Assembly (NCBI RefSeq): GCF_964204865.1
Contig: NC_135257.1
Coordinates: 16,306,001-16,370,000 of the forward strand
Reading direction: 5' to 3'
Source of the DNA: Styela clava
Lineage: Eukaryota
DNA length: 64,000 bases
Shown here: positions 27,846 to 55,100 of the stretch, in pieces
Layout: each line of letters opens with the position of its first letter
How positions within the stretch are numbered: position 1 is the first letter of the stretch
The notes under the pieces: model-generated
What the model was told of the DNA's origin: nothing
Database searches by the model: none
What the model saw: the letters and a program-made list of their open reading frames with translations, nothing else
Program-made: the position numbers and the translations under genes

Positions 27846-30800
27846 ATGCTAAACAAAGGAAAAATAATTATATTAGCTGTTATCGTAGCATCACTGCTCT
27901 TTAAAGGTAAAGAAATCATATGTGGAATCATTTTTCTTAATTATTTATAATTTATTCTTTTAAATAAATAATGCATGCAACAAAACACTAGATGTTTTGT
28001 TTCGCGTCCGATATTAGTGATTCTTCTCGCTCTTCATTATTTTGTTTGTTTGTTTTATAACAATTATAAGCAGAATACTTTTCTGGGACTCCCTTATAAT
28101 TCAATATATTTTCAGAAGGAAAAAGTACCCGGATAAAAGAAAGAAAAACGTTCTGCTATGTGTGCGACAATGCTGCGAATAACAAAGAATGTAATAAAAA
28201 TGGACCGATTGAATGTCAGCCTAGTCAGGTAAGTGCTGTGGCCTGTAGGTATAATGATATTACTCATAGATTTATAGTAATAGGTAACACCGGTAATGAA
28301 AAGCCTGTCTTGAACTCACAAAAAGTTAATAACAGATGTACTGTTTTGACCAAAATGTGCCTTTACAGCGGAAATTCAACCTGCAAACTTTGCAGTAAAC
28401 GACTTTAGCCTTCCACATCATTCTGGGAAGTACTTGAAAGCGGATAGCGTACAACTTTCGTTTCAAACCCCTGTCTTCTGGCATCACTGTCACAAGAAAA
28501 AAACGGACCTCCTGAGGTATGCGCACCAAGATGGCGCACAACCTGAACTCAGGTTGTGTACTAGGGTAGGGTTCGGATTGTGCGACAGTTTGGTGCGCAT
28601 ACTTTGGGAGTACCAAAAAAACAATTCGATGCTTAAGCGTTTAAAGGTATCGATTCAGCTATTCTAACAGCAATCATTTCTCTTAAATTTGAGGGCTCGG
28701 AACTTACCCTGAACAATTTCGTACAAAAATAAAAAAAAATAAAAACGTTCATTTACCTAATTTTTAGAGTTCCTGTTTGACTGAAATAAGAACTATCAAA
28801 CCAACGGCATACTCAACCGGCTCTGTTCGAATCACGAAGAGATGTAAGCAAGACATTGCATGCAACTCAAATGAACGACAGAACATATACAGATCGTTTC
28901 ACAATCAATGTAACAGTGATCCAAGTTCTAGATTCTCAGTTTGTCGGTGAGTTCTTTTTTATATCGATTGAATTTAAAAACATGCCAATTCTGTCAAGTT
29001 TGACTTAAGAAATAACTCATACTTGTTTAGGGGTTATTCAGAACGTTTTCAAATAACGAATACAGAATTTTGTGAAATATATATATAAGTATGTTATTTA
29101 CAAAAGGTACTGTTTTATGAAAACATTTGAGAATTCGTGGTGAGAGTAAAAAAAGGAGATAATTCAATTTGGGCTCGTTTGATATGCAACGTAAAAAGAC
29201 CAAAATCTAAAACTACCAATAGTTCAGTTGAAGTTGGGAGGCGACAACTTTTTTAGGTTATATTTCAAGCTTACAACATCGAATGGAGGAAATATTGTAT
29301 TTTATTTCAAAATTAAATTTAAAAACGAGATGCGATCCGAGTAAACAATATCTGTGTTTTTAGGCATTGCTGCAAGGACGATAAGATTCATGGCTGCAAC
29401 AAAAATTTGGAAGGTAGAGATATATAATACTTTAAATTACAATCTTAAATAAATAGTAATCGTTGAATGAAATTCAAATATAAATATTAAATCTTTAGGG
29501 CGTGGTTGTCCAAAGATGAAAGCACCGAAACATGGCAAATTAAACTGCAGAAGTGATAAAAAAGGAATCAAATGTAAAATAAGCTGCAAATCTGGTTTTA
29601 TTCTATCCAATGCCAGTTTGTCAACCATAACGTGTCGAAAAGATGGAACGTGGTCAAGTATCGTGCCGAGGTACGTTTGTAAAAATAATGACGTTTATTT
29701 TGCTAATTACCACGTTAAAAATGGTACTCTATTGTCTTAAAGAATAGGCAATGGATATATTTGGTGCGACTTCCTTAAACTAAGCTTTTAAAATTATCTG
29801 TCAGTATCTTTAAAATACTATTTAGGACAAAATAGTGATTTTCAAGATAGATATAAACTAGTTTAAGCGAACCGATTCTCGAAGATACCGCCAAAGCAAA
29901 CATTAGAAATTTCGAGAATTGTTAAGCATAGGAAGAATTCTTTTGGGGTTTAAATCGAGGAAACAACCACCCACACAAGTTTATTTTCATCATTATTAAA
30001 CTACATATTTTACAGTATTTTGCTATTTTGTATTTGCCGCAATTTCATTGTTTTTTAATCTATTTGAATCAGCAAACATCTTATGATGCCTTGTATATCG
30101 CATTTTGAATACTTTCCTTCATTTTCCCCTTTACTTTTCAATCCACAGTCCTTTGTACCAACGTGAAAATACAAACCAATTCATTTCATTACTATTTTAA
30201 TTTAGATGCAACCCAATGATATCTTTCGGAAGAAGTTCAGTCACAGAATCTGTTTGTCCTACGATCAAACCGACAGCCAACGCCAAATTATCGTGTTCAG
30301 AAGACGTAAGAATATTTTATATCACGCGTGTTCCCCTCATTTTGTTCCGAAGGCTCTGTATAAGTATCCACAGATATCTAACGATACGTGTGAAGCTACT
30401 AGTTTTGGAAGATCAGGAATGTCTTTCGTTTTCGGAATTGCCTACTCAATTTATTACAGCCTAGGCGAGGTGGTGGAAATAGGATTATTTACATATATCC
30501 ATTTCAATATGATAATTCTCAAAATATTCATATTGAATATGTATGTAGTTGATTATTCTAACAACATTTGTAAAATAAAAGGTATAAGAATAAGTTTATT
30601 TTACTTTTCATGACAAAATTTTGAACAATCTCGTATCACAAACAGTAAAATTCGTATGTTGCCGGCATTGGTGTGAAATGAAATTATACAGATTGAAAAA
30701 TTGTAATTGGTCATAAATACAAAACAAAATATGCAGAAAAAAAGTTATAGATTTCCATATTTTCTAACTTAGTGTGACGGGAAGGATTGTTTTGTGGGAA

Positions 30801-33800
30801 CTACATGTAATTTGCAATGCGAAGATGGATACATTAGTAAAGGTCCAACTATTACTTCGTGTGATTCCGACAAGAAACGAAAATCTGGAAAATGGAATCC
30901 AACATTGGATAAAACTCTGTGTGAAGGTAAGGAGACGGCGTTGAAAAACTTTACAAATTTTAAACACAAAGTGTAGGCCTACTTATTTTTGATAAATTCT
31001 TGTCGTTCTCTTGGAAATGTTTCGTTGTTGTGTGAAAAAATCGTGTTCAGAAGAAGTTGCTGAAAGCTATTGTATTTTGATTTTTTCAAATTCTATAAAA
31101 ATTTATATATATTTATCATCTATTTAATTTCTCAAATTCTATATTTCTATATTAATAAAAGGCACGCAATTTGGCTAAACTTTACTGACAATGTTCTGTA
31201 TGAGTTGAATATATTTCTATTCAATAGCGAATATTTATATATGCTACATTCTAATGATTGCGTGACCCTATTTAAAAAAAAGGATGTTCAACTCTAAAGC
31301 CACCCAAAAACGGCATAATAAATTGTGAAGGATCCGGATATAAAGGAAAATGTCGGATTGTATGCGATTCTGGATATATTATCTCCGATGCAATGTTGTC
31401 CAGCATAAGATGTCATAAAAATGGATCATGGTCAAATAATATTCCAAGGTATAGTCTGTTTATCTTGTTTATTTGGTCAAATAAATTATTATAATGTGAC
31501 CGTACTTTTCAATGTATACTAATTTTTGTTATATTCAGATGTACGGCTGTAAAAAGTTTTGAAAGAAGTATTGACTTCAACATTATGTTTTGTCCAGAAC
31601 TTAGCCCGATACTCAACGCCAACATGATTTGTTCTGACGAGGTGAGAATTTTTCCCATTATATAATTTTTGAAACACCGATGGTATCGGAATTTTTGCCC
31701 TGTATCTCGTGTATTGTAATTTTTTTATACCACGCGGAGTTTAAAATAAATTATCTTTTCTAAAAATATTTTTATACCTTTTTAAATATCAATTTGATTG
31801 AACTAATTAATTTGTAAATCGATTAGTATTGATGGAATCTACTAATTAACACTTAAAAAAAAGATACCATTTTTACCAACTGTACGCCAGCTTTGGGGTA
31901 GCTACCCTTCCATTTGTTATTCCATGAACTGTGGTTGTCATGGTTATCCCGCTTGTCGTGCCAAGAGTCATTTTTTCCACTTGGAACGAACTATACTGGG
32001 AATATCGGGTCGCTTAGATGTATCTTGAAGTCCGGCTTTTGTTAGTATTCTATGTTTGTCTTTTTTCCTCAGTATGATTTAATGTTAGAACTCCCTCATA
32101 GATGACGCTACTTGACAGCCTTTCACTCGCCCCCTTTACACTGAAATGCATTTTTGTTTTTATTTTTCTGCATTCTGTATGTACAATTGAGTACTTGAGG
32201 CATTTGAAAAAAAAATCAACTACTGACTGACTGATTTACTGAGTCAAGATAGAATACCTCGTGTATTTTATTGCGTTATTTTAAAATCGGTTCGCCCCGT
32301 GGTATTGCTCTCAGTTTCCTCTCTGTAAAATAAGTTTTTCACCCCTGTTATAGTTTTACGAGACTGTACATTTTTCCATTGCTTTACAGTGTGATGGAAG
32401 AGATTGTTTGGTTGGAACTACATGCAAGTTGCAATGTATTGAGGGATACATAAGCAACGGAACGACATTAACTTCATGCGATCTTGACAATGACGAAAAA
32501 TCGGCAAAATGGAATCCAACGTTTGATAATACCAAGTGTGAAGGTGCAGTAAAGAATTTAGAAACAATTTTCGGGTTTAGACTGTTGACGGGCCATGATT
32601 TTTTCCACATTCTCGGCTATTCTGATAGATTTCGCGGGGATAGATATTAAATATATACATGAAATAAGAGTGCAAAGCACAAATATATGGACCCGAGGTA
32701 CCGTAGTAAAACAGAGCCGTTCGATATAAATTAGAGAAAATTCGCTTGGTTACGCAGTTTATTTCTTTTAATCTATCAGAAAACAGTAATCAAAGAGAAC
32801 CAACTAAATTTGAGAATAAGATAAAAAAAATAGCTTTTTACCCAGTTTTGAAATGTTCATTCACGTTTCTAATTCACGAGACAATTAGTAAATAAAAATC
32901 AACAACTACAGTATTTTCACAGTAATGGATCGTGGCAATTTTACACCGGGTATAATGGCTTGAATAATAATATATATATTATTCATTTGAAGTATAAAAC
33001 CAAATGCTTGTTCAATAATGAAGTTTAGCAAGTACGATTATCAATTAGTTGGAATCATTAGTTGAATAATTGGTGGCACTCCCGTAGTATATGAATCAAA
33101 ATGGCGGACACCGGAACGTAGTATGTGTACCAAGTTAGGGGTACGCCATAATTTTAATCCAATTTTCTTTATTTTAGTTCTATTACGAGTTTGGGGACTA
33201 GCCAAGTGACTCTCTTGGTGCACATACTCCGGGAGCACCGTAATATTCACTAATCAAACTGAAGCCAAATAATTAATTCCACCTTTGTTTCCAGCGACAA
33301 GATGTCCAAGTTTAGAAGATCCAACAAACGGATATCTTGAATGTACAGGATCTGGGCATACTGAATGGTGTGAGGTTGTTTGCAGTGATGGGTACTTGAT
33401 TTCTGATTTCACGATGTCAAATATAACATGTGATAAAGCGGGAAAATGGTCAAGTGATGTTCCGAGGTAAGAATTATTATTTTTGGTAATTTTTATCAAT
33501 ATAACACTGATTAGGAAATAATATTTTTTTTTACAAATATTCAGATGTGAAGCTATGTCGAATTTCGGACGAAGCATCAACTTTGATTTTGTGTTCTGTG
33601 AGGAAATCTTCGCAACATCACATGCAAACATCACATGTTCAGACGATGTAAGATTTTTATTCGTTTTTCCTTTATTTCCAACGTTGCAGCGCTGAAAATA
33701 TTTGATAAACTTGCTTTGATTCTTTGCAACACTCTTACTATATAACATATTCAGAAGTGTGCTGGATATACTCGTTCTATAATTGTCGCAACCAGACATG

Positions 33801-36800
33801 AATGTGGGAGCAAGTAGATGTTTTTGGTCTCATTTAATGCCTCACTAAGTGGTTTAGACCTATTCGTCGATCGAAATTAGCTACACCTAAGCAACCCGTT
33901 TTACTTCCATAGATTACAAATTTTCAAAGTAGATATTTATGTTAACAAACAGCAAATAATTTTTTTTTTAATTTTAGTGTGATGGAACAGACTGTCTGGT
34001 TGGATCTACGTGTAATTTACAATGTGAAGATGGGTATATTAGTACTGGTCCTACAGTTACTTCATGCAAACTCGACACTGAAGCAACATTAGGAATATGG
34101 AATCCAACTTTTGAAAACACAATCTGTAAAGGTATATTTTAATTTTACGTATTGAGAGAAAAATTGTCAAACAAAAATAGAATCGAAACACTTTGGGCTT
34201 TTTTTGGTTAAAATATTTAAATATTTGAACGTTTAATCAAAATTAAACTTCATACCTTCGTTTGAAAATAGGCTGTCCCTCTTTGCAAGAACCGATCAAC
34301 GGCTATCTGAAATGTTCTGGAACCGGGTACAATAAAAAGTGTGAAGTTGTTTGTGATGTTGGTCACGTGATTTCCGATGCCTCGTTATCAAATGTAATAT
34401 GTCTTGGAAACGGATCGTGGTCAATAGATTTACCGAGGTAAGAATTCCCGATGCTTCCGAAGTATGTCTTATGTGTACCAATATGGAGGTAACTAATTTC
34501 GTTCGCCTTTTTCACATCCAGTTGTGTAAAGGGAATGCACCCTACGGGTAAGGGGATATATTCACTTGGCTACCACAGACAGTCCTCGAACTCGTAATAG
34601 AACAAAAATAATGAAAATCGGAATAAAATTATCGTCTAAACCCAACCTGGTACACATGCTACGGGAGTACCGTATTTTCAATCTTACAAATTTAAAAGAC
34701 ATTATGATATTATGTGATTTGACTTAACAGTGAGTTTCAATCATTTCAGATGTGAAGCGATATCAAATTTTGGACGGAGTAAAGACTTTAATCTTGTTTT
34801 CTGCGATGAAATCGCTACAATACCACATGCCGACATCACATGCTCAGAAAATGTAAGAAATATCATTCGTTATCCTTATCAATGAATAATTGTTTGAATA
34901 AAATAATATCCTTCACCAAATTCACCATCCTGTAACCTATTTATTGTTTTGAAGTGCAATGGAGTAGATTGCTTGATTGGAACTACCTGTAGTATACAAT
35001 GTGAAGCTGGTTATATTAGCAATGGGCCAACATTTACTTCATGTGATCCAATCAAGGGAGGAAAATCAGCCACATGGAATCCCGTAATAGACGATACATT
35101 TTGTAAAGGTGAGAACTGCAAACATGTGTACCTTTATGCAGAGATTCACTTTTTTAATCAGTTGCCTTCCTTTCGCCTATTTTTGAACTTTTTATTCATT
35201 CCACCAAGTTCTTCAAACTGTAATATTTTTTTGAATATTTTTGTATTAAACCATCGAACATGGTGAAAGTCACTCACATATTTATAGTTCCATAATACCT
35301 ATATATACATGGCGTTTTGATAACTTTCGATACAATAGTATTTCACACTTACCATTGATAAATGTCTTGGTTGCGTTAATAGATATTAAAATTAGACAGA
35401 TGTTACTACTAAACAATTTCTCATTTCATCATACTAACATAAATCTTCATTTTCACCCAAATTCTTAATGCTTCTTACAATTGTTATTCAACTTTTTCCA
35501 GAATCATGCAAACCACTTGAAGCCCCAGCAAATGGATCCATAGCATGTGTGAATGTAAATGAAACCGATGATGTCATATCAGCATGTAGAGTTACTTGTA
35601 ATGCAGGCTATGAATTAGTTGGGACTGAAGTTAGATTCTGCAATAAATCAGGATTGTGGTCTGGAGAAAATGCTAAATGTATAGGTGAGTTAGCGTCCTG
35701 GAAAGTATGAAACTGTATTGAATACGGGTGTTTCATTTCGCATTTTCGTATTACTTGATCCTTATTTGGTACGATCATAAAACATGATTGAATCAACAAT
35801 TTATAGCAACAGAAAATAAAATCTTGTTTCACAAAATACACAAGTTTTATCCAATTTTTTTTAGAAAATAGTCGAGCACCGTATGACTGACTAACTCTAT
35901 ATCAGGAAACCTGCAAAAGGGAAAAAAAATGTTTTTTTTTCCGCCTCTACTTCATTGATAAAATTAGGCATTTTTCCTTTATTGCAAAGTCGACTAACTC
36001 TATAAAAATGTAATTGAGTATAACTATCATTTAGTGTCGACAGTTTGTCCAAAACTGCAGCCACCAGTTAACGGAAACATGGAGTGTATTGGTGACCAAA
36101 CTATCCCTGGTGGATTTTCTTGCAAGATGAGTTGTATACCGGGATATATATTATTTGGTGATGACATAAGAGCTTGCATGTCAGATGGAACTTGGTCAGG
36201 GAAAGATACAAAATGCAACGGTATGTTACAGAAAAAAAAGAATATCATAAAATAATGACGAATTCTGTTTCCTAGATGTCATTTTATTGAGTTTATCACG
36301 AAATCAATTTAGAAAAACGATGCCTTACTTTGAGAAGACCAATGAACGGTGTTCTGAAATGTGTGAAGAACAAAAACATTGAGACGTGTGAAATCAGATG
36401 TACTGCTGGGTACTTGATTTCTGACAGTACAGTATCAAGTATATCTTGTTACAACGGAGTATGGCCGGATCATCCTCCAAGGTAAGTCTGTAGATGTACT
36501 AAGAGAATACATGCAAGTCATGATTTAGATGTGATAATAGTTCGCCGATAGGACAGTCATAAACTATTGTATTGATAACTTCAAATTTGTAATTTCCCCA
36601 TTCATGCAGTTTCTGAGTAGTACCGTATATATTTATACACAACCCTAAAGCAACAGCTTCATCTCCCCACTCTGATTTGATAAAGATTTAATAATTTGAA
36701 CGCGACGTCACTATGACAACATCGTAATGCTTTTAAGCCTACACTCGTTTTCAGATGCGTCAGATTAGCAGCATTTGGAAGAAGTAGTGGAGTTATAGGC

Positions 36801-39800
36801 TGTCCTCAAATCAACGACATTGTGAACGGGAAAATAACTTGTTCTGAAGAGGTAAGATCCACTAACGGCATATTACTTAATAATGCAAAAAAAGCAATGC
36901 ACAAATACATGGACATGAAGGTTCCATAACCTAGCCGCAGAATCTGCAGACTACGCCATTCACACGGAATGTGAGCGAACATAGAATTCGCAAAATCAAA
37001 ACGCGGGGCAGTCGTGACTCGTGAGGGTCACACATACCGGAGTAAAAACAGTGCTTGGATGAATGAACTAAAATAAAACAAGTTATGAAATTTGGGGTGA
37101 AATATTGGATCTACTAAGACTCGGACAAGTTTTTGAAAAAGTGATAGCCGTTTGACGAATATTTCCTTCCAGTACCAAAAATTTTACATCCATCGGTCCA
37201 TAACAACGACAACGCTAAGCAAAACGATCCAGACACCACCTCGTGTTCAATAACTTAATATTATAAAATATATTTGTATTGTTTGCAGTGTAATGAGGGC
37301 AACTGTGCTTTGGGAACTGAATGTAATTTACAATGTGAAGATGGATATTCAAGCAAAGGTCCAACATCCACTTCATGCGATCCCGGGGAGAAAACATTGG
37401 CAAGATGGATTCCGCTGTTAGAACATACACGTTGCGAAGGTTTGCGATTAAAATAGAATTAATGTGATGAAGTATAGCTAAACCTATCACATTATGTCTA
37501 AAATGTATTCCAAGGCTCTTTGTTTTTCATATTGAATACTAATCGAGTATGTGTTATTAAGAGCCTGGTTTAGGAGGGGAGAAGGAATTAACGTGAACAA
37601 AAAATATTGCTTTAATCTGATTTTAAATCGAGTTGCATAAAATGTAATGATTATCTTTTTTTGCAGAAAATGTTGTTTGTACGCCTTTCAAAGTAAAGAA
37701 TGCTGTTGTCGAATGTTTTGGGCCAGTTGGTGAGGCAGGCATCGGCTCTAAGTGTTACATTACTTGTATGTATGGATTGTTGCTATCAGGCTCTGCTTTG
37801 AGAGTTTGTGGTGACGATGGACAGTGGACGAATGATATGCCAACATGCACAGGTATGCATCAGGTCCTTGTATGTTTAAAGTCTTTGTATATGAGGTATG
37901 TTCAATCATTAAATTGACTCATGTTCATGGGTATATTATAACCATATTGTAATTTTTTATACTTTCATTTATATCTCCTTATTATAGCGTCATGCAAACC
38001 GCTAAAATCTCCACCAAACGGCTCGATAACTTGCGTGGATACGGACGAAGCCGGTGAATATAAATCGGCATGTCGATTTACGTGTGACGACGGATATCAA
38101 CTCATTGGACAATATGTCAGATACTGTGACACATTAGGAATATGGTCTGGAAAAGATTCTAAATGCTTACGTGAGTTTATATTCTTGATGGAGTCCTTGA
38201 AAGTTTGGTGTTCACTGTGAAAATAGACTTTTTTAGAAGAATATCACTATTGATCCAGAAGTTCACAGAATGAAATTTAAAATAAACTCAACTGTAATAT
38301 TCTGCAATATAGCAAAATTCAACATATTCTAAATAGGAACAAATCACTGAACGTAAATCTAGAATATATATAACTTTATTTGCACATGTAAATGCTCGAT
38401 TGAAAATGTTTCACACTTTATCATAGTATACAACATTTTGTTATAATATGTTAAGTTACAATTATTTCAATCAATAAAAAAGTTAACCATACGGACCCAC
38501 CCGAAATATTTCTAAGTGAAATAGTTTCTAAAATTTTAGCTTCAACCGTATGTCCAACTCTTCGATCGCCAATAAACGGCAGAATAGAATGCATTGGAGA
38601 CAATTCAGTATCAGGAGAAATGTCATGCAAAATTAGCTGTTCTCCTGGATATAAATTATCAGGTGATAAACTCAAAGCTTGTCTGGCTAATGGGACTTGG
38701 ACAGGAAGAGAAGTGACATGTACGGGTAAGACAACAATAGTATAGCGTTTATTCTATATGGTGAAAATTTTCATTCAATTTTTATACCTTCCAATCGAAT
38801 ACAATTTGAAAAAAAAACTTCGGTTGCAAATGAAATCACATCGCTGTTCTCGACAAGTTTGTTGAGTCAAGCATGCAAACTCTGCTAGCTATTCGTAGTA
38901 TAGACACTGGATCAGGTTTTATGACATATTGTACTTTGTAAAATGTGGAAATCGACTTTATTTTTCATTTTTTTCAGAAATCGAATGTCCTCCGATGAAT
39001 CTTCCAAACAACGGATATCTTAAATGTACAGGAAACGGCCAGAATGAAATATGTCAAGTTGTTTGTGACTCGGGATATTTGATTTCTGACTTGAGTCTCT
39101 CCAATATAACATGCGATAAAGATGGATCGTGGTCAAATGTTGTACCAAGGTAAAATAGGGATCACAAGTTGATAAAATTGCGTAGATATGTACCGACCAC
39201 GTTGTGAAATTTAACAAACAATGCACGAAGCATAACTTTCGTTTTAAACTGTGAATTATGTCTGAACTTCGGTGGACAATCTCACATTTTTTTTTCGATT
39301 GCAATAAATTTTTATTTGAATACAAAGTTATGCAAGGTAAAGTTGTTCTAATCGAAAGTCAAAATAATTATTCATGGTGCAATTGAATCAATCGATTGGA
39401 CTTATTAAAAATATTACAACCATTCAAATTTATCCAAATTAATAGTCTTGACTGTAATGAGTGGTTATTTTTCTGTTTTTAAATACTGTATGCATTGTGA
39501 AGATTTATATATATATTCACTTTCACCGTCACTTTTTTTGCATCCCCTTATATCCGCCAATGATCTGTTCACAATTATTTGTAGATGCATAGCAGTGGAC
39601 GTTTCTAATTTCGGAAGAAGTTTAGACATTTTATTTTGTCCTGAACTTGGAGAAGTTCCGAACGGAAAAATTTCATGTTTGGAAGAGGTAAGTGCTTACC
39701 TATTTGCAAATTTATCACGTAATAGTGATTCGTGAAGATAGCTTCACAAATTCCGCGTCAAATTAAATAATTATTTTTCATATTTCTTGTTCAGTGTGAT

Positions 39801-42800
39801 GAAATGGGCTGCTTTCTGGGAACTGTTTGTAATTTGCAATGTGAGGTTGGGTATATAAGCAATGGTCCAACGTTCACATCGTGCGATCTTGAGAGAAATG
39901 AAAAATCAACATCGTGGTATCCAGCATTGGATAATATCTGTGAAAAAAGTAATCAAATAGTGCATTTCCCTAACTTTTTTTTGTTAAATTTCTCATTTTG
40001 TTTCTTCCTGAACTCTTTATCTCCCCTCCCAGTGCATAAAACCTCCTTATTTGTTCGAACTTTAATAGATCCGCTTCTAATGTTATGCGCGAGTCGCAGA
40101 TTTTTGTACGATTAATGGTTTGATTATTTGTTCATCAAAAGTATTTAGTAGTAAAAATGAAAAAAAAACTAAATATATTAGTAATAGTAGAGCGAATGCA
40201 TAGCAAAATTCTCCCTGGGAAAGAATTTCTCCACGGTTGGAAACATTGAAATAATGAGTTAGTCAATGTGTATTTTTGTAACAAATGTCTATGTTTTATG
40301 ACAGAAATTGGTTGCCATCCATTCCAAGTTAACAATGGAGTTGTTGAATGCTTTGGACCCGAAGGAGAAAGTGGACTTGGTTCGCAATGTCACACAACCT
40401 GTATGTACGGTTTAAGTTTGAACGGTCCTAAAGTGAGATATTGTCTTAACAACGGTCAATGGTCGGGTTATGCTCCCATTTGTACAGGCAAGTTTTGCTA
40501 TTCATTTCTTGAATAACCGTTATTACCGGAACCGTTATTCTCAAGAAATATTTTGGTGTAATAACCATAGTTTTCAGCTGTTATATCGTCGAATATCCTA
40601 TATCCAAATATGTTTGTATTGGTATTTCAGTACAGTTTTAGTAACTGAATTGTTTTAATTTTTTTTACATATATGTTTTCCACTACAGCAAGCTTTTGCG
40701 AAGATATAATACCACCTTTGAATGGAAGATATATATGTACTCCAAACTTCAAAACAAAATGGATTGGTACACACTGCGATGTTGAATGCTTTCCTGGTTT
40801 CGAAATGGTCATGGGTTCTTCAAGAAGAAATTGCCTTGACAGCGGATTATGGGACGGCACACTAGCTCTATGCGCAGGTCGGCAATACTTCCACCATTTA
40901 ATAAAAAACCTTACGAGTATTCTTCGTATAAAAGTCGAGTACAAATCTGCTGTGAATGAGTGCTGCTGGTTCGTTTTTTGGCGCTGTTCAAGTACATCAT
41001 TAGTTTTTCGAATCTCAGATAAAGAGCTTGTACGTGAACTGTCCAATAGTTTCTACACTACAGTTACACAGATGTACTAGTTTGAACATACTTCCAAAAA
41101 GATCTTTTTTTTTTAATTTATCCCCATCTATGGGACGCCACGCCAGCTCTATGTGCAGGTTGTCAACCATTTATTAGAACAACAATCTTCCGAGTATTCT
41201 TTGTATAAATGTCATGTACGAATCTGCTTTGATTGAGTTTTCTGGCGCTGTTTGAGTACATCTGTGATTCTTGTTAAACTTTGGTTTCGATTTGTGGATT
41301 TATTGTTTAACACAGTTTAAATATTTGACAAATTTATTGGTCGTTACGTCAAATGGCCCACTTCGGGGTGTGCAATCTACGGCCCGCGGGCAAGTGCGGC
41401 CCACAAGAAAAAATTGTGCAGCCCGCGGAGAAGTGAATGATGTGCGGCCCGCGAAACGATTTTTGTTTTATTTAGTTCAATTTAGTATGTGCGAGTTATT
41501 CTCTTTGCGTCGCAAAGCCTATACCTGAATTCAATTTATCATGTCTATAACGTTGCGCTACCTTGTGCGAAGCCAACAACGCATGTCCTAAGATCATTAA
41601 CCAAACTTTTTGTGTCTGCAACTACTAGGAAGCCTATGTTATTAAATAAAATATGCGATCCGCGGTTTCGTTCAGTTATTTATATCTGCTCTCCTGTATT
41701 AAAGGTTGCACACCCCTGGCTCATTTAATAAGCATACTTAACATACAAATTGCGCAAGAAAGAAATTTTTGGTAATTGTAGAAAGTTATATATTAAATTA
41801 GCTAATGGAAATCTCCATTGCCTATAATAATATTAGATAAAGAGCTATCATTTGTACGTGAACTCTGCAGAATTTAAACACAAGTTCAAAAAACTATTTT
41901 CAATTTATCCCTTCTACAGCTACTTGCGAACCACCGCAACCTCCACCACGCGGATCAATAAGTTGTGTTGATATAGCTGAGATTGATGGTTACACATCTG
42001 CATGTAAAATTACATGTGATCCTGGTTATCAATTAATTGGACAAGATGTTAGGCTATGCAATACCTCGGGAATATGGTCTGGAGAAAGTTCCAAATGTGT
42101 CGGTAAGTTTCAATTTATACGTTTTTCCAGACAGCGTGATTGAAAATGTAATAAATTATTTGTAGAAAGTGAAATGTTTTCTTTTTTATTTAACATGTAG
42201 GATAGATGTGAACGCCTCACAATACATGATATGCCATGCTGGTGTAACTACAGACGAGATTTTGATTTTATGCAAATTAATTTTGAAGGCTGTCCTATGC
42301 TACATCACCACGTTTGAATAACCATTCATACGGCTCATTTATTTGAAATCTGACTGTAACTCCAATATAAGTGAAAATATAATTTGCCTATAAATATGTG
42401 ATATATATAATAAGACACAAGTATTTTAATAATTATGTGCCTCGCTTATGTAGTGTCGACAACATGTCCAGTTCTCCAAACACCATTGAACGGGAAAATA
42501 GAATGTGTTGGTGACAATTCAGCTGCAGGAAAAACGTCTTGCAAAACAAGTTGTTTCCCGGGGTTTTCATTATATGGAGATGAAATTAGATCCTGTGAAA
42601 CAGACGGGACTTGGTCAGGAGAAGAAACGACCTGTGTTGGTAAGTTGAATAATGTACTAAAATTTCCTATGTGTGTTTTTGTGTGTGTGCGTTGACATTT
42701 TGAAGGAACGCTAACCCAACTAAAAAACTGATACTTTTTTGATGATTGGCTGAATATTGCTATGCGTACAGTTGTAACAATAGCAAAATGAAAGATAAAA

Positions 42801-45800
42801 TCTAATTGGAGTTAAGCTTTAGTCTTATCTAGATTGTCATTGCTAATTACACACTTTCGGTTTAAACTCCATGCCTAACCCCCGGAGGGCCACAAAATGG
42901 AAGGATATGCCTATTCGGTCATTCAAAAAAAAATAGCTCTTTACATATATATTATTAGATATCGGTGGTGGACCTCCTGAAGTATGCGCACCAAGATGGC
43001 GCACAGCCTGAACTCGGGTTGTGTACCAGTTTAGGGTTCAGGTTGTGCGACATCTTGGTGCGCATACTTCAGGAGTACCATCGGTGGATACTTGATGCTT
43101 ATAGCGAATGGCGGTAATAATAGTCGTATACAAATAGTATATATATGGTTATGTATTTCTTTTCAGAAACATGCTCGGTGCCTCCCACGGTTAAAAATGG
43201 AGAGTTTCAATGCCAACAGATTAAAACAAATTCATTGTATCAAACATTCTGTCGACTCGAATGTATGACAGGCTATAGACTTGAAGGAAAAATATTTGAA
43301 ACGAATTGTGATTCAACTGGAAGATGGACAGATATGGATGGAATGTGTCGACGTAAGAACGCTCGTAGGATTTAGTTTCTTCTCCTATTCGATTTATCGT
43401 TAGATAAAAATACACATACATCCACCCAACTGTGCTATAGAATAAGACAAAGATCCTTCCGACTCGATCAATAAATACATCGACGACCCTAGCACTCGTT
43501 TCTTTCCTTACTCCATAACATATCGGCTATATATGCGACAAGCCGGTGCATGCAATGCCTTTTTGAGCTGGAAATAAAAATTTGACGCCGTTTACATGAA
43601 ACAGGAATGAGCCAAAAATTTAATGCTGTGATTAAACCTTATTAAATTTATCAGGGATTACTTGCCCGAAATTACCCAATCACGATGGCAACACTTTGGT
43701 CTGTTCCCCGGGAGAACTCGAGGACGGCGATTTCCCGGTTGGTTCTGAATGCAGAACAATCTGTAATAATTATAAAGCGTCCGCTCATGCATGGCAGCAC
43801 AAAAAGATATGTACGGATAAAGGAACTTGGATCGGACCAGATGCTGCTTGTCCTGGTAAATTTTGTTGATATATATATTTGATGTTACACATCGTTACGA
43901 ATCTGGCATAAATATATAACAAAAAGTAACTATTTTATTTTATCATTTTTACCCAATGACATTCAAGTAATATGTCTCATTTTATCGAATATAAATTTAG
44001 GTAGAATCAACTATTGGCCCTCTGCATTTGTTACCTTCCAATTTAATTTTAACACTTTCAACCGTTGCCGTAGAAGTACAGCTATCTAAGACTGGAATTC
44101 TCGGATACAACTTTTTTAACTTGACATAACTATCATAATTTCAATGACATTTTTACCTTTGTAGAAACATGTATATATAATTAGAATTGATATCAAATGC
44201 AGTATTAAGAGGCATTAAATGAGGCGCAATAATTGAAATATCTGTAACCAAATCTTCTTTTCATAGTGGATTGTGAGTGGTCATGGAGCGCTTGGAGTAC
44301 ATGCGGATATAATGGGAAGAGAACTCAAAAAGTCATTGTAGGAATTCCGTCCAAAAACGGAGGAAGGCAGTGTCCACAAAAAATTATCAACGAGAAGGGT
44401 AACTTATTTAAATATTAGACAAAGATTCCACGTACATGTATTGTTCGTAATAGTTAGCAATGCAATGCCCAATTTCAATGTGACCGAGGTTTTGCTAGGT
44501 TATGTAAAGTGAATGTGCTACATGCTCTTAAATAACTGACAAGGGTGGTCTATGCACTAGTGGAAGCTTGGTAAAACTTCTTTCATTCTTTTAAGTGGAA
44601 CGATATTCTTCAACATGAAAAACTGCTATATTAAATTTTATTAATTTCGTTCAAGCGGGGAAACAATTTTAGTTTTCGGGTCTTCGAAACAAATTATAGT
44701 TTTGAAATTTAAGTTTTTTAACAAATGCCTTGTTAAACGATTACGGTCAATTATTTGCATCGGTTTAATGATTTTGATTATTTTGCAGAATGTTGTAAAG
44801 TTGAATATGCGTCACTGGATGGAATCTGTTATACATTCCACTGTGAAAATCAGACATGGTCAGCGGCAGAAGAAAACTGTAAATTGGCAGGTGGTCAGCT
44901 GGTCAAAGTTGATACAATCAGAAAACACCAGTTTTTACAGGTAATATATATATCATTTAGTATCACAATGGATCACCTCGAAAACTCAATTTTAAGGTAG
45001 TTTTAAAACAATTATTTGGTCGATTAGCTTTAAACAATAATATTATTATATTAAAATAATACTATGATTGCGTCCAGTGTGCTGTTGTTACGTCCAAGTT
45101 ACTTTTGCCTTAATCGTCAATTTATGTTAATTTCATTTTCAGCAAATAATGGAATTAAAAAATCTTCCGGACGCTTGGATAGGATTGTCTGCTAAAGATG
45201 GAAACTTTGTGTGGGCTGATGGAGATTCATTGGGAGAATTTCACAGATGGTTTGAACGTGACGGACTTCACAAGCAACCAGATAACTACAGGTAAGAAAT
45301 ATATATATACATAAACTATGGGTGGTCGCTTGAAAACAGAGAAAATTTGTCAAACAGCTAATTATTTTTACAAAGAATAGACTCCGGAAGAGTTTGGCAA
45401 GAACGACTCCAACTCCACATTCCTGACTGAAACCAAAATAATTTTTGGTCAGTATGCCAGATTGCTCGAACTTTTTTTTATATATATAGTATATACCTTA
45501 CATTTATAAATATCCAGGCTTGTCCATGGGACATATTTTTCTGTCTCATACCATGGGGATTTCATTCCCATTGACAACCCTGTCGTTGTCCAACCACGAA
45601 ATAAACAATAGATACAAGAGAGAGTAAAAAACATTCAAAAGGTAAAAAAAAGTATGAAGATTAAGATTCACTCTGACGTATTCAAGTTGCAGGGACATGG
45701 CTACTGTTTCGCGTGGAATATAAATGTGTGCCGTACCATCCCGTGGGATTCCCATAGACAAGCATACATAGTGAATTTCAAAATTGATGAATTTCATTGC

Positions 45801-46029
45801 CGTTACTTATTATATATTAAAGGTACAAATTCCAAATAATTTACAAGCGTTCGTGAGCAATGTGAAATTAATCTATTTGTTTTTCAGAAAATCGGAAGGA
45901 TGCGTGAAGATGACGTCAGCATGGCCAAAAAGTGTTCGTTACTCTAGCAACTTCGATTGGAACGACGTGGACTGCTACACTTATGCTAATTACATTTGTG
46001 AGAAAAAATCTGATGATTGCAAAAATTGA
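27846..46029 (+). CDS. Secreted mosaic protein, ~1858 aa, 37 coding exons: signal peptide - Ly6/uPAR-like domain - 23 sushi/CCP - TSP1 - C-type lectin
   Basis: Exons: 27846-27906, 28116-28228, 28768-28946, 29364-29413, 29499-29670, 30206-30305, 30773-30926, 31283-31448, 31539-31641, 32390-32543, 33295-33466, 33545-33647, 33978-34131, 34272-34437, 34750-34852, 34955-35108, 35502-35684, 36035-36220, 36313-36481, 36755-36851, 37289-37439, 37667-37852, 37988-38170, 38540-38725, 38978-39149, 39585-39687, 39795-39948, 40305-40487, 40689-40877, 41920-42102, 42454-42639, 43167-43352, 43655-43855, 44267-44398, 44789-44940, 45143-45291, 45888-46029. These sum to 5577 nt in one open frame with all phases compatible. 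No TM segment seen. Confidence 0.88.
28151..29400 (+). other. Ly6/uPAR-like (three-finger) domain exons of the mosaic protein
   Basis: FCYVCDN...ECN...ECQPSQSSCLTEIR...ITKRCKQ..AC...QC...VCRHCCKDDKIHGCN; terminal CC-x-CN signature. Confidence 0.7.
28505..28614. mobile_element. 110-bp palindromic MITE; second copy at 42970-43079
   Basis: GGACCTCCTGA(G/A)GTATGCGCACCAAGATG ... TTGGTGCGCATACTT..GGAGTACC, flanked by 8-bp AAAAAAAC on both sides. Termini are related to the 210-bp family. Confidence 0.85.
41364..41718. mobile_element. hAT-type MITE; oppositely oriented copy at 48157-48469
   Basis: CGGGGTGTGCAA ... TTGCACACCCCTG ends. Degenerate 8-bp flanks GCCCACTT/GCTCATTT here and TATTACAT/TAGTACAT at the 48-kb copy. 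Confidence 0.75.
44267..44398 (+). other. Thrombospondin type-1 (spondin-like) domain exon
   Basis: VDCEWSWSAWSTC...KRTQK...PSKNGGRQCP. Confidence 0.8.
44789..46029 (+). other. C-type lectin domain (3 exons), galactose-type motif
   Basis: CYTF...TWSAAEENC...GGQLV, AWIGL, FVWADG, QPDN, EGCV, WNDVDC...YICE. Confidence 0.9.
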
Positions 46030-49120: not shown

Positions 49121-52100
49121 TCAACTAATCAACATGTCCTAAAAAACAGAAAAAAAAATAATGTTAATCAAGGATCAAACTCAAACATATGAACACCAAT
49201 CTCTTACAACCTAAAAGTCTATGCCACTGTTTCCCAACCTGTGGGTCGTGACCCAAAGCTGGATCGCATAATAATTTTTTTTCGCCTGTTTTTTCAACAA
49301 AAACCTGAAAGTTAATTGATTTTACCTTCTAGTAAATTTCATTGCTTATCTTGTATTTGGCATTGAAGTATTGCTCAATAGTAATGGGAAGTATCACAGC
49401 ATTAAATTTGTGAGTATCTATATTCTAAGTGATGCCACCTTACAATTTCAATACTCGTTGATGGTAAATAAGAGCATGTTCTCACTTTGAGGTAATTTCT
49501 GGAGAAATTGAATGTAATGTAACAACAAGGCCACGCAACAAAAATGATATTTGTCAATCATACCTCATCTGAATCATCATGATATGAAATGCTACTATTT
49601 CCATTTGGACGAGGCGTTGTACCATTCACAGCACCATCTTCCATAAGTGAGTTCGATTCTGCTCCAGTACCATAACTTGCTGCATGTTCAGATGTTGGTA
49701 ACGGAACATACTTTACTCGTTTTCCACTAAAACAATAATTAAAATTTTTTATGTTAAAGATTATGAGAGAGGAAATATTTGTAGTTTGTCCCGCAGAAAC
49801 CTAATCGATAACTGAATATACTCAGTTATCTGGGAAATCACTAGGCAGAAACACAATAAAAAACAATGCATAACAACTGAGTGAAATTCAGCACATATTC
49901 ATGTAAGTGCCTTTATGATGTTTTCTATACTATCTATGATTATAGACCACCCGATAAAAACAAACAAAACTTGTATATAATATAAGTTATAACATATTTG
50001 GCAGACTGATACAAATTGAAATATATATTCTATATTCTCAATAACTTCTTCAAAGGGTATATCTGGTTAAAGTTTCATGTGCATATAGAATTCATTTTTC
50101 TAGTTAGTGTATCAATAAAACATATTTAAAATCAAGTTACCTCATTTGACGTTTTCTGACAATATATACAAGTGCAAGGATGAGAACAACGACAACAAAT
50201 ACCAAGAAAACTATTACTCCTGGAGATGTCGATTTCTTTGTTTCTCCAGATGGATGATATTGTGAAAAATTATCCTTATCGACACCAAAATCATCTTTCT
50301 TCTCTTCACTCTGAAAGATTTTTTTAATAAAAAAAATTTTATGATATAATAAGTAAAAACAATTAACATTGAAGCGAAGCCTCAATTTTATAAAAAATTT
50401 CCAATAGATGTCATCATGGATTTCACAGATTTGCTCTTAGCAAGGCTTTACACAAGTAAATACCGAGACATGGGAACACAGAGTGTTTCAAATGCAGCAT
50501 AGGACATTTCATTCATGCAACATCGGGTAGTGAGTCTAGATCACTGTTGAGCCATGGCCCACTGCTGGGCCAAAGAATCATTTTTAGGTGGGGCCATAAG
50601 CTATTAAAAATTGCTACATAAATTTAGTTGAATTTGATTGTCATAGCAATGAATGATGATGTGGTTTTTTGCACTGAGTGATAATTTTCATTTCATTTAT
50701 TAGTGTTTTTGGATGAAAGGGAATTAATGTAAAAATTTTTCTCGTAGTTTTCCCCTTGCATAAGAAGGTTAATGGGCCACAGGATTTTTCGTGCAACAAA
50801 AGTGGGCCACAGAAAAAAGGGTTGAGAACCACTGGTCTGAAATGAACAATTTCAATAAATTTCTATAATGAGAGATTTTGAATATTCAGTGGCTGCTAAA
50901 CTAGAATCTTGTCTGGAGCATCATGTTGATCTTCGCTCTATGATCAGTAAATTATCAAATAACTTTAATACTCACAGGTTTGCACTTTTTATGCAAAGGA
51001 ATGACTTGTGAATTTGGAGTGAAACCGCCCTGACATTTATCTCCTGGTATTTTCCGATAACCTTTTGTTTTTATAATTTCATCTTGATCTTTCTTACAAA
51101 TATCTATATGTGTTGCCTGAAAATCTCCATCCCTGACACAATCAAAGCCTTCTCGAACATAACCATAATCACTGTAAATACGGAAGAGATTTTTAAATCT
51201 TCCCAGCAAACATACAATATAAGACAATATACACAAGCATGATAGTGCTAACTTATCACATGAACATAATAGTTTAGACATCCAATATTAGAGATCTTAG
51301 TTTCAAGTTTTATTTAGTGATCAGATACATAAGCAAAAACACAATGGAAAGAGATCAAACTTGGGTTTTTCTGATAAATCTCCTCAATTAGAAAGAAATA
51401 GTCACAAAGTTGCTACGAAGTTGCCATATTTACCACAAATAATCTGTCTTCTGGCATTGACATGGCTTCAATGTTACTGCATTCTGATATTGTTTGCCAT
51501 TGATACAAACAGTACCTTTCTTCCTTCTATTGAAAATCACATCAGCACCTAGAAGACAACTATCTTCTCCATATTCTTTGTTCGATTCATGAGCTTTCCA
51601 GTCTTGATAATCACTCTTTTGACCTAGAAAATGATGAAACACAAAACTTCAAAATGATAAAACTCAGGAGAGATGAGAATTTTTTTTAATAGTTAAAAGT
51701 CTTACTGTCTATATTAAAAAAAATCATTTAGATTTTTTATTCCAATCAGAGTGAATCCAAATCTGCTCAACAATTGTTTAAAATTACTATAATAATGTTT
51801 TGGTATTGAATCATTGTTCTGAATATTCATTTAAAAAATAATTTGAAGGTTGAATTTGCAATTTCATAACCATTCATTTGACACAATTCATGCTCTTTCA
51901 CTATTGCATAGTCAAGCTTCGAAAATACAAAATAATATTATCGTTGTCATCAGGGACATCCAAAATAAGCCGATCACCCAAATACATTCAGAATTAATAA
52001 TAAAAATATAATCATTTGCGCAAAATCCTTCATTGAACGTGAATTCAAAAACCATAGCTTCCATTCAACGCTATAAACCTGATGGTGGCAAACTACGGCC

Positions 52101-55100
52101 CGCGGGCCAAATCTAGCCTGTCGGGTAATTCAACCTGGCCCACCTGATGCTGGCTGCTACAACCAAACTGAAACCAAATTTTGATGTTTAAGCTAAAAAA
52201 TAGCTCAAGGAATTTGTTGAGATTGCGATCACATTTAGTTTTGGCACGCTCTGGGCTTATTGTTTTCCACTTTTGCTTTTGTCACACTGTGAATATACCG
52301 TAGTTCATAACATGTTACTTTTTACGTCACACTTACATGGCCCGCCAGTCTAGGTGGAGAAAATTTTTGGCCCCTGGTTTAAACATCTTGCCTACCTCTG
52401 CTATAAACCTTCAATATAAACGTAAATCAAGTTGATACAGTGATAAAAAAAAATCATACAAGGTTTCTTCATAATAGCTGAGAAATCCATAGTAATAGAT
52501 CTCCATGCTCCATCACCACTCTTATCCCATCCCCATAAACCTAAGCTTGTACTTCTTGAACCTGGTTCAACAGAAAGGCCTGTTACTAGGATAGGCGAAT
52601 CAACGAATTTGTATTCTTCCCATGATTGGCCTTCATCCATAGAATATCTGAATAAAAAGTGAACATTTGATTGAGTGGGAGTGTAAAGTGTTGTTGAGCA
52701 ATAGAAAAACAAGAGCCTATTCATTAAGATTTTGAATGATAAGATACTCTTGTATGAGTTGGATTGTGGTAAGTAAAAGAGAATGCATTTTGTATTCTAT
52801 GAAAATTTCATTAAGAAAACCCACAAAATATTTCACTTGGACAAACTTCAAACCTACATCTAAACAGTGCCGAAAGGCTTTTTCAGAGTAAATTTCATGT
52901 AAAATTTTTTGTGAGTGAATTCCACCATTTATCGAGAATGTGGCTAAATGGAATGACTTGAACTTGTCATCAATTAACTGCTAGTTAATTCAGTGATTCA
53001 ATCAACTCGAGACTCTTATGATACTCGTTATTGACTTGACTCACAACACAAGGTTTAGGGACTTTCACCCAACATTGGGTAAAACATATACAAAGTTTCA
53101 AATACGGGTACACATGTAAGATAAACTTCATATTTTGAATTCCTGACCTTGACTAGTAAAGTGTCTAAGAAATTAAGGTAAAATTGCTGTGTGGTTAGTT
53201 CCAAAAATTTTAGTCTACGGCGATAGTGAACAGTTAACGAAAACTCCACACTTCCCAAACGGGCACAAGGCCTGTCCACTTGTTTAGATAGCAAGGCCTG
53301 TATGCCTGTTTGTCGCCGAAGTATGACCGAGATCGTCATGACGACCAATTTAGTCACAATTTTTTGCTCCGAAGAGGAGTGTTCCTAGGAGTTTTGCTCC
53401 TGTAACATTTTTGAGGCAAATAAACATACATATATACAAGAGGTTTGTGGAACAACAGTGTTTCGCAGAACACAGTTTGAGAAACGCTGGACTAGTCAAA
53501 GTAGCTAAGTATGAATTGAATATAGTAATTTGAAAAATGTAGCATTTTCTTAATTTATGAATAAACAGAATTCTGTCATTTGGGGCAATTCTTATTCACA
53601 GTCACAGAATTATTAAAATCGATACCTACATGAAAGAGTGAATAATCAAACCACCCCAATTTTTCTTTCGAGTTATTTTACTTCCTGTTTGGGCAATAAC
53701 AAACAAAACCTGAATATCAGTATATTCAATACATCTAACCAATCATACTTTATAACGTTAGTAGGAACCGATTTTGAATAGTTGACGGCAAATAACAATC
53801 CACCAGAATCTCCAATAGCATAGAATTGAGGACCTTTCAAATGTGGAGGTTGAAGCCATGAATATCCACCGTCATTTGAAATATATACATCGGGAGTATT
53901 AAAATTCAATGCGTCACCTGTTGTAAAAACATGAATGTATAATAAAAGGTAAGAATGAAAATTATAAAGTTTAATCTAGAATCAAATTTTCATAATTTCA
54001 TAAGTACTCTCTCAAAGTTTTATAACATTCAATTCAATTCCAAATAGTAATTGTTCCATTTATCTCCTGCAGATATAATAATTGTCGGCATCACGGTTAA
54101 AGACGTCTGGATTAAATGCAATGCCTCCATCCTAAACCAAAAAGTAGTCAAATTGGGTAGGCAACGGGAACTTGAAACCCCCCTCAAGTACATTCCTCTT
54201 TATTCACTTCTAGCGAAAGTGTGGCAATACCAATATAAAAACACTAAAGTATACAGTACAAGACAAAATTGGATGACACATAGGAAGTTTGTCATGCTAC
54301 CTTGCAGCACAATTCAGATATGGCCATATGTTGGTTTTAATATTTAGACATTGTCTTATAAAGATTTAAGAAGATTACTATTCTACCTATATTTCCATGA
54401 GCAATGATGATTCCAGTAGCACTGGCAGAAGATTTAGGAAACTCAGGTATTGCTACACCTTTTGATCGACTGAACAAACTGTGAATTTGAAGAAAGCACT
54501 GAAAAACAAAACAAAAATAAACAATTTGAACACTTCGGGAAGGTTAGTGTGCCTTTGGCATGAAGTAATCCAAGTTGACGATTATTAACCCAAAGTCTAC
54601 AAAAAATTCTGGTCTGTGATTAAAACTGTCCGAGATTAGAACTAAAGAAATATTCTGAAAAAAAAAGGTTTCAAAAATAGAACCAAAAAAAATCTTGAAC
54701 AAGAAAAATTTTCTCAGAAAGAGATTATGTTTTTCTGATTTATTTTGATAATACTATCTTGTTCAAGCATCCTTGTGGCAACTGACAGATATAGATCCGA
54801 AGTAGAAAGTAAACAAGGAGAAAGGACTTGCAGTTTAGTACACAATACCTGTATTAGCTGTAAACAATGAAATTTTCATCTTACCACTTTCTCAGTAGGA
54901 GGACAAACGCTGTTTTTTGGCGAATCAATATTTTGCCATGTTCCTCCTTTATTGTAAGTAATCATTGAATGAATAGTTGAGCCTTGATGTTCGAGTTGTG
55001 ATGTTATGTAAACACCTTCGAGACTAGAAACCTATAATATATAAAAGTGAATAGGAGATTACAACAACATGTCATACACAATTGCCAGCCTTCTTCTCAA

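Follow-up and report, generated by a model that had tools for sequence, protein, structure and literature searches.

Arrays of complement control protein (CCP, or sushi) modules are usually pictured as beads on a string that is left uncut, the linkers being short and not conserved, and in the regulators of complement activation, i.e. proteins of the factor H, CR1 and C4BP type, the CCPs are contiguous and joined by linkers of 3-8 amino acids. Here we describe a gene of the ascidian Styela clava, located in a 64,000-nucleotide stretch of AT-rich animal DNA (GC 31-37%; contig NC_135257.1 of assembly GCF_964204865.1, positions 16,306,001 to 16,370,000; hereafter the window, to which all coordinates refer unless stated otherwise), the modelled product of which has six inter-CCP linkers that exceed this range, each of them carrying an F-(G/E)-R-S motif. 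Its identity to CR1 or C4BP-like matches is only 22-23%.

Other described systems resemble the Styela protein in part. P- and E-selectin share with it CCPs of the six-cysteine type and a C-type lectin domain, and a P-selectin-like protein (P0005) is among the best profile matches; in the selectins, however, the lectin is N-terminal and is followed by EGF, with a transmembrane anchor and short CCP linkers, whereas in the Styela protein the lectin is C-terminal, no transmembrane segment or EGF is seen, and six of the linkers are long. The textbook complement activation sites, i.e. the Arg-Lys bond of factor B/C2, the Arg-Ile bond of MASP/C1r/C1s and the Arg-Ser bond of C3, can be likened to the putative Styela sites in that a trypsin-fold protease cuts at a single Arg in a longer linker after CCPs. 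By contrast, the complement proteins have one activation site, leading into a VWA or protease domain, rather than six sites between CCPs with no catalytic domain. The linker-processed polyproteins, such as the pacifastin-type inhibitor precursors and the nematode polyprotein allergens, combine repeated folded units with a conserved short motif, as does the Styela protein; those known to us are cut at dibasic or furin-type sites and none consists of sushi modules, nor do we know of any sushi protein organised as a cut polyprotein or a multi-bait sensor. LEV-9 of Caenorhabditis elegans is a secreted multi-CCP protein the function of which requires proteolytic processing (review PMC9083331). Unlike the Styela protein, it undergoes a single C-terminal cleavage and has no repeated conserved linker motif.

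Six motif-bearing linkers and selection on their peptide

The F-(G/E)-R-S feature is confirmed: it is expressed, dates far back within the gene and is subject to strong selection at the level of the peptide. Six-frame translation places the six motifs on the forward strand at 30225, 31558, 33564, 34769, 36774 and 39610, all in a common context consisting of a pyrimidine tract, AG, a Cys codon, the linker, a second Cys with a CCP-like start, and a GTAAGA-type donor. In all six cases the motif lies between the last cysteine of a B-type CCP and the first cysteine of an A-type module with eight cysteines. In an exon chain built by enumerating splice sites by phase, the B-type exon (phase 1-2) ends in ...W-x-x-x-x-P and two further bases, which belong to an Arg codon, the A1 exon (phase 2-0, 97-103 nt) holds Cys4 of B, the linker and the opening 16-17 residues of the module that follows, and the A2 exon (phase 0-1) holds the remainder of the A-type module.

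The first A1 exon (30206-30305) links Cys4 of B0, via a 15-residue linker (30210-30254) with FGRS at 30225-30236, to the start of A-type CCP 1. The second (31539-31641) has a 16-residue linker (31543-31590) and is the one that reads FERS (31558-31569), the others all having FGRS, i.e. at 33564-33575 in exon 3 (33545-33647; 16-residue linker, 33549-33596), at 34769-34780 in exon 4 (34750-34852; 16 residues, 34754-34801), at 36774-36785 in exon 5 (36755-36851; 14 residues, 36759-36800) and at 39610-39621 in exon 6 (39585-39687; 16 residues, 39589-39636). Exons 5 and 6 are supported by their splice signals and by their presence in the RefSeq protein XP_077971760.1 (1361 aa, Styela; hereafter P0001), which is identical to the exon translations and contains all six linkers; exons 1-4 are in addition bounded by joints in transcript-like contigs, as described below.

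Measured from the cysteine positions of P0001, the Cys4-to-Cys1 spacing at the six B-to-A junctions is 15, 16, 16, 16, 14 and 16 residues, compared with 2-5 residues at the remaining eleven CCP-CCP junctions. The initial annotation of this DNA had reported six linkers of 14-16 residues on phase 2-0 exons, which the coordinates, the splice signals and P0001 bear out; its range of 3-5 residues for the other junctions was correct in that they are short, but a little too narrow, and the phase 2-0 exon that it assigned to each linker is shared with Cys4 of the preceding module and the beginning of the next. The A-to-B junctions are the tightest of all, at 2-4 residues, and the long linkers thus delimit rigid blocks, each with an A module first and a B module last.

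The pattern of substitution among the six repeats distinguishes the motif sharply from its surroundings. For the four motif codons the proportion of synonymous differences (pS) is 0.74 and that of nonsynonymous differences (pN) 0.03, giving a pN/pS of 0.05; the corresponding values for the other 14 linker columns are 0.66, 0.54 and 0.82, and the CCP part of the A1 exon has a pN/pS of 0.53. Apart from three cysteines, the only invariant columns of the A1 exon are F, R and S. The motif codons, which are as had been described for all six copies, are TTC/TTT, GGA or GAA, AGA/CGA/CGG and AGT/AGC; five nucleotide positions vary within the motif, and at four of them (TTC/TTT, AGA/CGA, CGA/CGG and AGT/AGC) the change is synonymous. 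Selection therefore acts on the peptide and not on the DNA; the earlier proposals to that effect, and that F, R and S are invariant while the flanks diverge freely, are strongly supported, given that pS is about 0.7 both within and outside the motif. Judged by these codons, F-(G/E)-R-S is a short linear motif under strong purifying selection inside a linker that otherwise drifts almost neutrally.

Recent duplication or gene conversion as the source of the motif identity is ruled out by the synonymous divergence. Pairwise dS (synonymous divergence) over B, A1 and A2 ranges from 0.8 to saturation, with omega (dN/dS) of 0.12-0.37, the units share 60-79% identity in exon DNA, and their introns cannot be aligned; the repeat units are, by sequence comparison, old. 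It might be argued that conservation operates on the RNA, with the purine-rich GGAAGAAG in the motif acting as an exonic splicing enhancer for such small exons, and GGAAGAAGT is indeed present in four of the six copies, with GAAAGAAGT in unit 2. The purine run is, however, broken in units 3 and 4 (GGACGAAGC and GGACGGAGT, respectively) with the peptide kept, and this, together with the synonymous changes, largely excludes constraint at the RNA level (e.g. a GAAGAAG enhancer), which we consider very improbable.

Gene model, module layout and transcripts

As modelled from the exon chain, open frames and Pfam matches, the whole gene occupies 27846-46026 on the forward strand and encodes a signal peptide, an LU/three-finger domain, 23 CCP modules, a TSP1 domain and a C-type lectin domain (CTLD). 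P0001 covers 27846 to about 40513 and supplies the 5′ exons, i.e. the signal peptide (27846-27905) and the LU/three-finger domain, which is spread over three exons. The last exon that it shares with our model, E2, ends at 40487/40488 in a GC donor (ACAG/GCAAGT), and P0001 stops at 1361 residues (40513) because the RefSeq model reads into the intron with this GC donor. The seven downstream CCPs, TSP1 and the C-type lectin (40689-46026), a modelled tail, lie outside P0001. The tail beyond 40487, and hence a product of ~1858 aa, depends on the putative GC-AG intron; the length of ~1858 aa that had been proposed for the precursor, with its CCP-TSP1-lectin end, accordingly hangs on that intron, while the RefSeq model has 1361 residues.

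The exon model gives the module order [LU-B] (A-B)x3 (A-C-D-B) (A-E-C-D-B) (A-E-F-C-D-G-H-TSP1-CTLD), which coincides with the seven blocks listed previously, i.e. LU plus CCP, three CCP pairs, a 4-CCP block, a 5-CCP block and a tail of seven CCPs, TSP1 and lectin. The B exons are B0 (29499-29670, ending ...VPR before Cys4), B1 (31283-31448), B2 (33295-33466), B3 (34272-34437), B4 (36313-36481) and B5 (38978-39149), and these, like the C, D and E exons, are sushi modules by their matches to Pfam Sushi (PF00084; E 2e-9 to 6e-6). The A2 exons (30773-30926, 32390-32543, 33978-34131, 34955-35108, 37289-37439 and 39795-39948), taken alone, fall just below the Pfam cut-off of 20.7 bits, at 19.3-20.6 bits (20.6 for the first); they align to positions 19-53 of Sushi, and A1 plus A2 therefore constitutes a split CCP with eight cysteines. 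All B, C, D and E modules have the six-cysteine, selectin-type pattern, in which there is an extra Cys after the N-G turn and another four residues before Cys2, whilst the A modules have this pattern plus a further C-x4-C pair. Around the extra C-x4-C loop, in the hypervariable region of the A-type module (A1/A2 junctions, e.g. 30297-30790), is an acidic cluster, S-E-D / C-D-G-x-D-C, the conservation of which is highest among units 1-3; it may bind Ca2+ or pair with the Arg that is invariant in the linker.

The RefSeq name of P0001 is 'sushi, von Willebrand factor type A, EGF and pentraxin domain-containing protein 1-like' ('SVEP1-like'). A Pfam scan of P0001 finds Sushi alone, in 15 stretches totalling 283 bits, and no VWA, EGF or pentraxin domain is seen in the open frames; weak TSP1 and Lectin_C matches in the tail exons are all under their cut-offs. 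Because only Sushi is detected in P0001, the name is a misnomer, and identity with SVEP1/polydom, which requires VWA, EGF, HYR and pentraxin, is rejected. From its sequence, the product can be assigned as a tunicate LU-CCP array with selectin-type modules.

Contigs from four runs labelled as this organism, which from their record are probably RNA, were compared with the genome over 30150-36149. Their coverage is confined to the exons, with GT..AG joints at every predicted junction of units 1-4, i.e. 30305->30773, 30926->31283, 31448->31539 (31446/8->31537/9), 31641->32390 (31639/41->32388/90), 32543->33295, 33466->33545 (33464/6->33543/5), 33647->33978, 34131->34272, 34437->34750 (34435/7->34748/50), 34852->34955, 35108->35502 and 35684->36035, and the linker exons of units 1-4 are thus part of the message, which these contigs show solely in its uncut form. 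Variants among the contigs alter linker residues in unit 1 (T13A and E14K) and unit 4 (L15F), leaving the motif untouched in all. Over the exons of 30200-36100 there are 32 differences between contigs and genome, 18 of which change an amino acid, six of the latter in the B2 module; the gene looks highly polymorphic, and a cluster of differences at 30803-30835 may be due to a mis-laid paralogous exon.

One further joint, 30924->33293 (runs X5 and X7), leads from A2 exon 1 straight to B2, such that B1-A1(2)-A2(2), a phase 1-1 cassette corresponding to one B-A unit, is skipped. The contig sequence continues for just 24 letters past this joint, which may stem from skipping of the cassette, from an allele differing in copy number or from faulty assembly. 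The introns at 32950-33350 and 34350-34750 have a depth in the thousands in all four runs; these stretches share an open frame (…PRTRNRTKI.KIG.KL…PNLVH.LR…), of which there are more copies at about 46150, 48560 and 63665, and look like an abundant transcribed interspersed repeat. No tRNA was detected by ARAGORN between 27000 and 47000. Downstream of the gene, at 50955-52724 on the minus strand, are open frames that by eye resemble a sortilin/Vps10-domain receptor (a 10CC-type Cys-rich part and a beta-propeller blade).

What may read the motif

The motif may be the recognition site of an Arg-specific serine protease of the trypsin fold, a reading that embraces cleavage of any kind and to which we would give a probability of roughly 0.4. 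Cutting would take place between Arg and Ser, the residues Phe, Gly, Arg and Ser then occupying P3, P2, P1 and P1′, respectively, and a secreted LU-CCP23-TSP1-lectin protein would be severed at up to six joints, either constitutively, as a polyprotein releasing A-B CCP pairs, or in a regulated manner, as a bait or sensor. A fuller version of the proposal, which is more tentative, is that the product is a sushi polyprotein or a multi-bait sensor, in which an Arg-specific protease of the haemolymph (MASP-like or clotting-type), or one from a pathogen, would cut six F-G-R-S joints after the Arg, so freeing A-B pairs and larger blocks with new, largely hydrophobic Ser N-termini (S-I-D-F..., S-I-N-F..., S-L-D-I...). 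Within this version the new N-termini could serve as tethered ligands, or as switches of fragment binding.

The protease reading gains support from the occurrence of the motifs at homologous positions in six old repeat units. What is found is repeated units plus a conserved candidate cleavage motif, with six motifs between module blocks, the arrangement looked for in a polyprotein; a linker of 14-16 residues is long enough for limited proteolysis. The conserved island corresponds exactly to P3-P1′, with S, N or A at P4, and may mirror the subsite cleft of a serine protease. Trypsin-fold enzymes have X-Gly-Arg as a standard substrate, and several proteins are cut at an Arg-Ser bond, including C3, C3b at its factor I sites, PAR1/PAR2 and the D1-D2 linker of uPAR; MASPs are present in ascidians. 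SGRSA is a substrate optimised for uPA, and the sequence occurs in papers on urokinase, whilst PFGRSA is said to be the best phage-display substrate of tPA. X-Gly-Arg peptides serve as substrates of MASP-1, and FGR-AMC is a working one, used in its assay (PMC7793589).

Several features of the linkers weigh against this proposal. They are hydrophobic, with Kyte-Doolittle values of 0.0 to +0.96 compared with -0.27 for the whole protein, and in four of the units the residues following R-S are rich in F, I and L (IDFNIMF, INFDFVF, KDFNLVF and LDILF), a character more in keeping with packing as a strand or hairpin than with an exposed loop. Glu replaces Gly at P2 in unit 2, dibasic or furin-type sites, as classical polyproteins have them, are lacking, and the conservation of the motif rests on paralogous repeats inside one gene. 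Structure predictions do not discriminate: AF2 modelling of the 34-residue A1 exon alone with its five paralogues gave a pLDDT of 52.7 and no secondary structure, a short fragment for which the result is uninformative, and an ESMFold2 complex of B2 (419-476) with linker plus A3 (477-561) scored 0.00, with no interface between B and linker-A, which counts for neither side.

The main rival explanation, which we regard as rather unlikely, takes the linker to be a structural element that is never cut, i.e. an amphipathic beta-hairpin or packed hinge of 14-16 residues that fixes the angle between B and A. In such an element F-G-R-S would form the turn, with Phe packed, Gly-Arg as a two-residue turn, and Arg forming a salt bridge with the acidic cluster (S-E-D / C-D-G-x-D-C) of the A module. 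The hydrophobicity just described is in keeping with this, as is the alignment, by which hydrophobic residues at linker positions 4, 13, 15 and 17 would lie on one face if the linker is drawn as a hairpin around G-R; the pattern is, however, absent from units 1 and 5. The linker is always paired with an eight-cysteine A module and with a B module whose Cys4 shares its exon, and its invariant share (3/14) is similar to that of the folded A2 half-module (11/45). On the other hand, outside the motif it is almost neutral (pN/pS 0.82) and variable in length, both unusual for a packed element, and it is Gly, normally the most constrained residue of a turn, that has changed (to Glu, in unit 2), whereas Arg and Ser are invariant.

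An island of constraint would equally be the signature of a linear motif that is not a protease site, e.g. one at which a receptor or lectin partner docks, or one modified on the invariant Ser, present six-fold for avidity. The even placing of the six copies between rigid blocks, and the occurrence of R-S-x-D in four of six, would fit such a role, but F-x-R-S is not an N-glycosylation sequon, nor S-x-E, nor the xylosylation motif S-G, and it matches none of the extracellular modification or docking motifs known to us; extracellular linear motifs are, moreover, most often protease sites. We consider this explanation improbable. Cleavage is the reasonable leading hypothesis, in either its polyprotein or its bait form, and under it a protease would be the reader of the motif and the pieces would be separated.

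Relatives and implications

The best collinear relative of P0001 is a protein from another tunicate, Clavelina lepadiformis (XP_076799377.1, 'SVEP1-like'; P0002), with 25% identity (E 1e-69) and gaps opposite the Styela linkers. Like the Styela protein, it has a signal peptide, an N-terminal three-finger domain of the Ly6/uPAR type with the same Cys pattern, and a long CCP array. By contrast its linkers are uniformly of 5 residues (R-P-N-P-K type) without F-x-R-S, and it ends in VWA instead of TSP1 and lectin. Within the Styela genome, two other loci, L009 (G000:C17:7470069-7473131) and L015 (G000:C16:8200052-8203108), have a similar LU/three-finger exon (…KRCKQ..AC.NN…VCRCCC…) adjoining ordinary CCP exons, and LU-CCP arrays therefore form, by sequence, a small family of genes in Styela, just as they do in Clavelina. 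Given the Clavelina relative with short linkers and the other Styela LU-CCP loci, the long linker with its motif represents a feature by which this gene is specialised within the tunicate LU-CCP family.

A search of the 377-Mb genome with a profile of the A1 exon gives six matches (E 7e-17 to 5e-14), every one in this gene; those that rank next (E >= 0.47) cover CCP starts only, in ordinary CCP genes. With a profile of the six A2 exons, a HMMER search of 1.84 billion representative proteins returned P0001 (E 8e-151) and then generic CCP proteins only. A word-index protein search with residues 130-900 of P0001 gave nothing above 28% identity, and an inter-CCP linker with F-[GE]-R-S was present in none of the 67 proteins retrieved. 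The A1 exon had no match at E<=10 in a profile search of the PDB, an ESM Atlas search for look-alikes gave generic sushi clusters only, short transcript-derived fragments around A2 exon 2 yielded no candidate with a stop-free reference, and neither literature on this protein or motif nor proteomic data were found. As far as the available data go, in protein collections that are without stolidobranch proteomes, the long-linker exon type thus appears unique to this gene.

If the cleavage proposal is correct, the Arg-Ser motif, six-fold and under strong selection in expanded linkers, would provide a first indication of a CCP array built for disassembly or for protease reporting, and this in an ascidian, i.e. 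in the sister group of the vertebrates, where a lectin-complement system with MASPs, C3 and CR3-type integrins is already present. If the linker is structural instead, it would represent a new kind of rigid inter-CCP joint, of relevance to the modelling of complement-regulator architecture.

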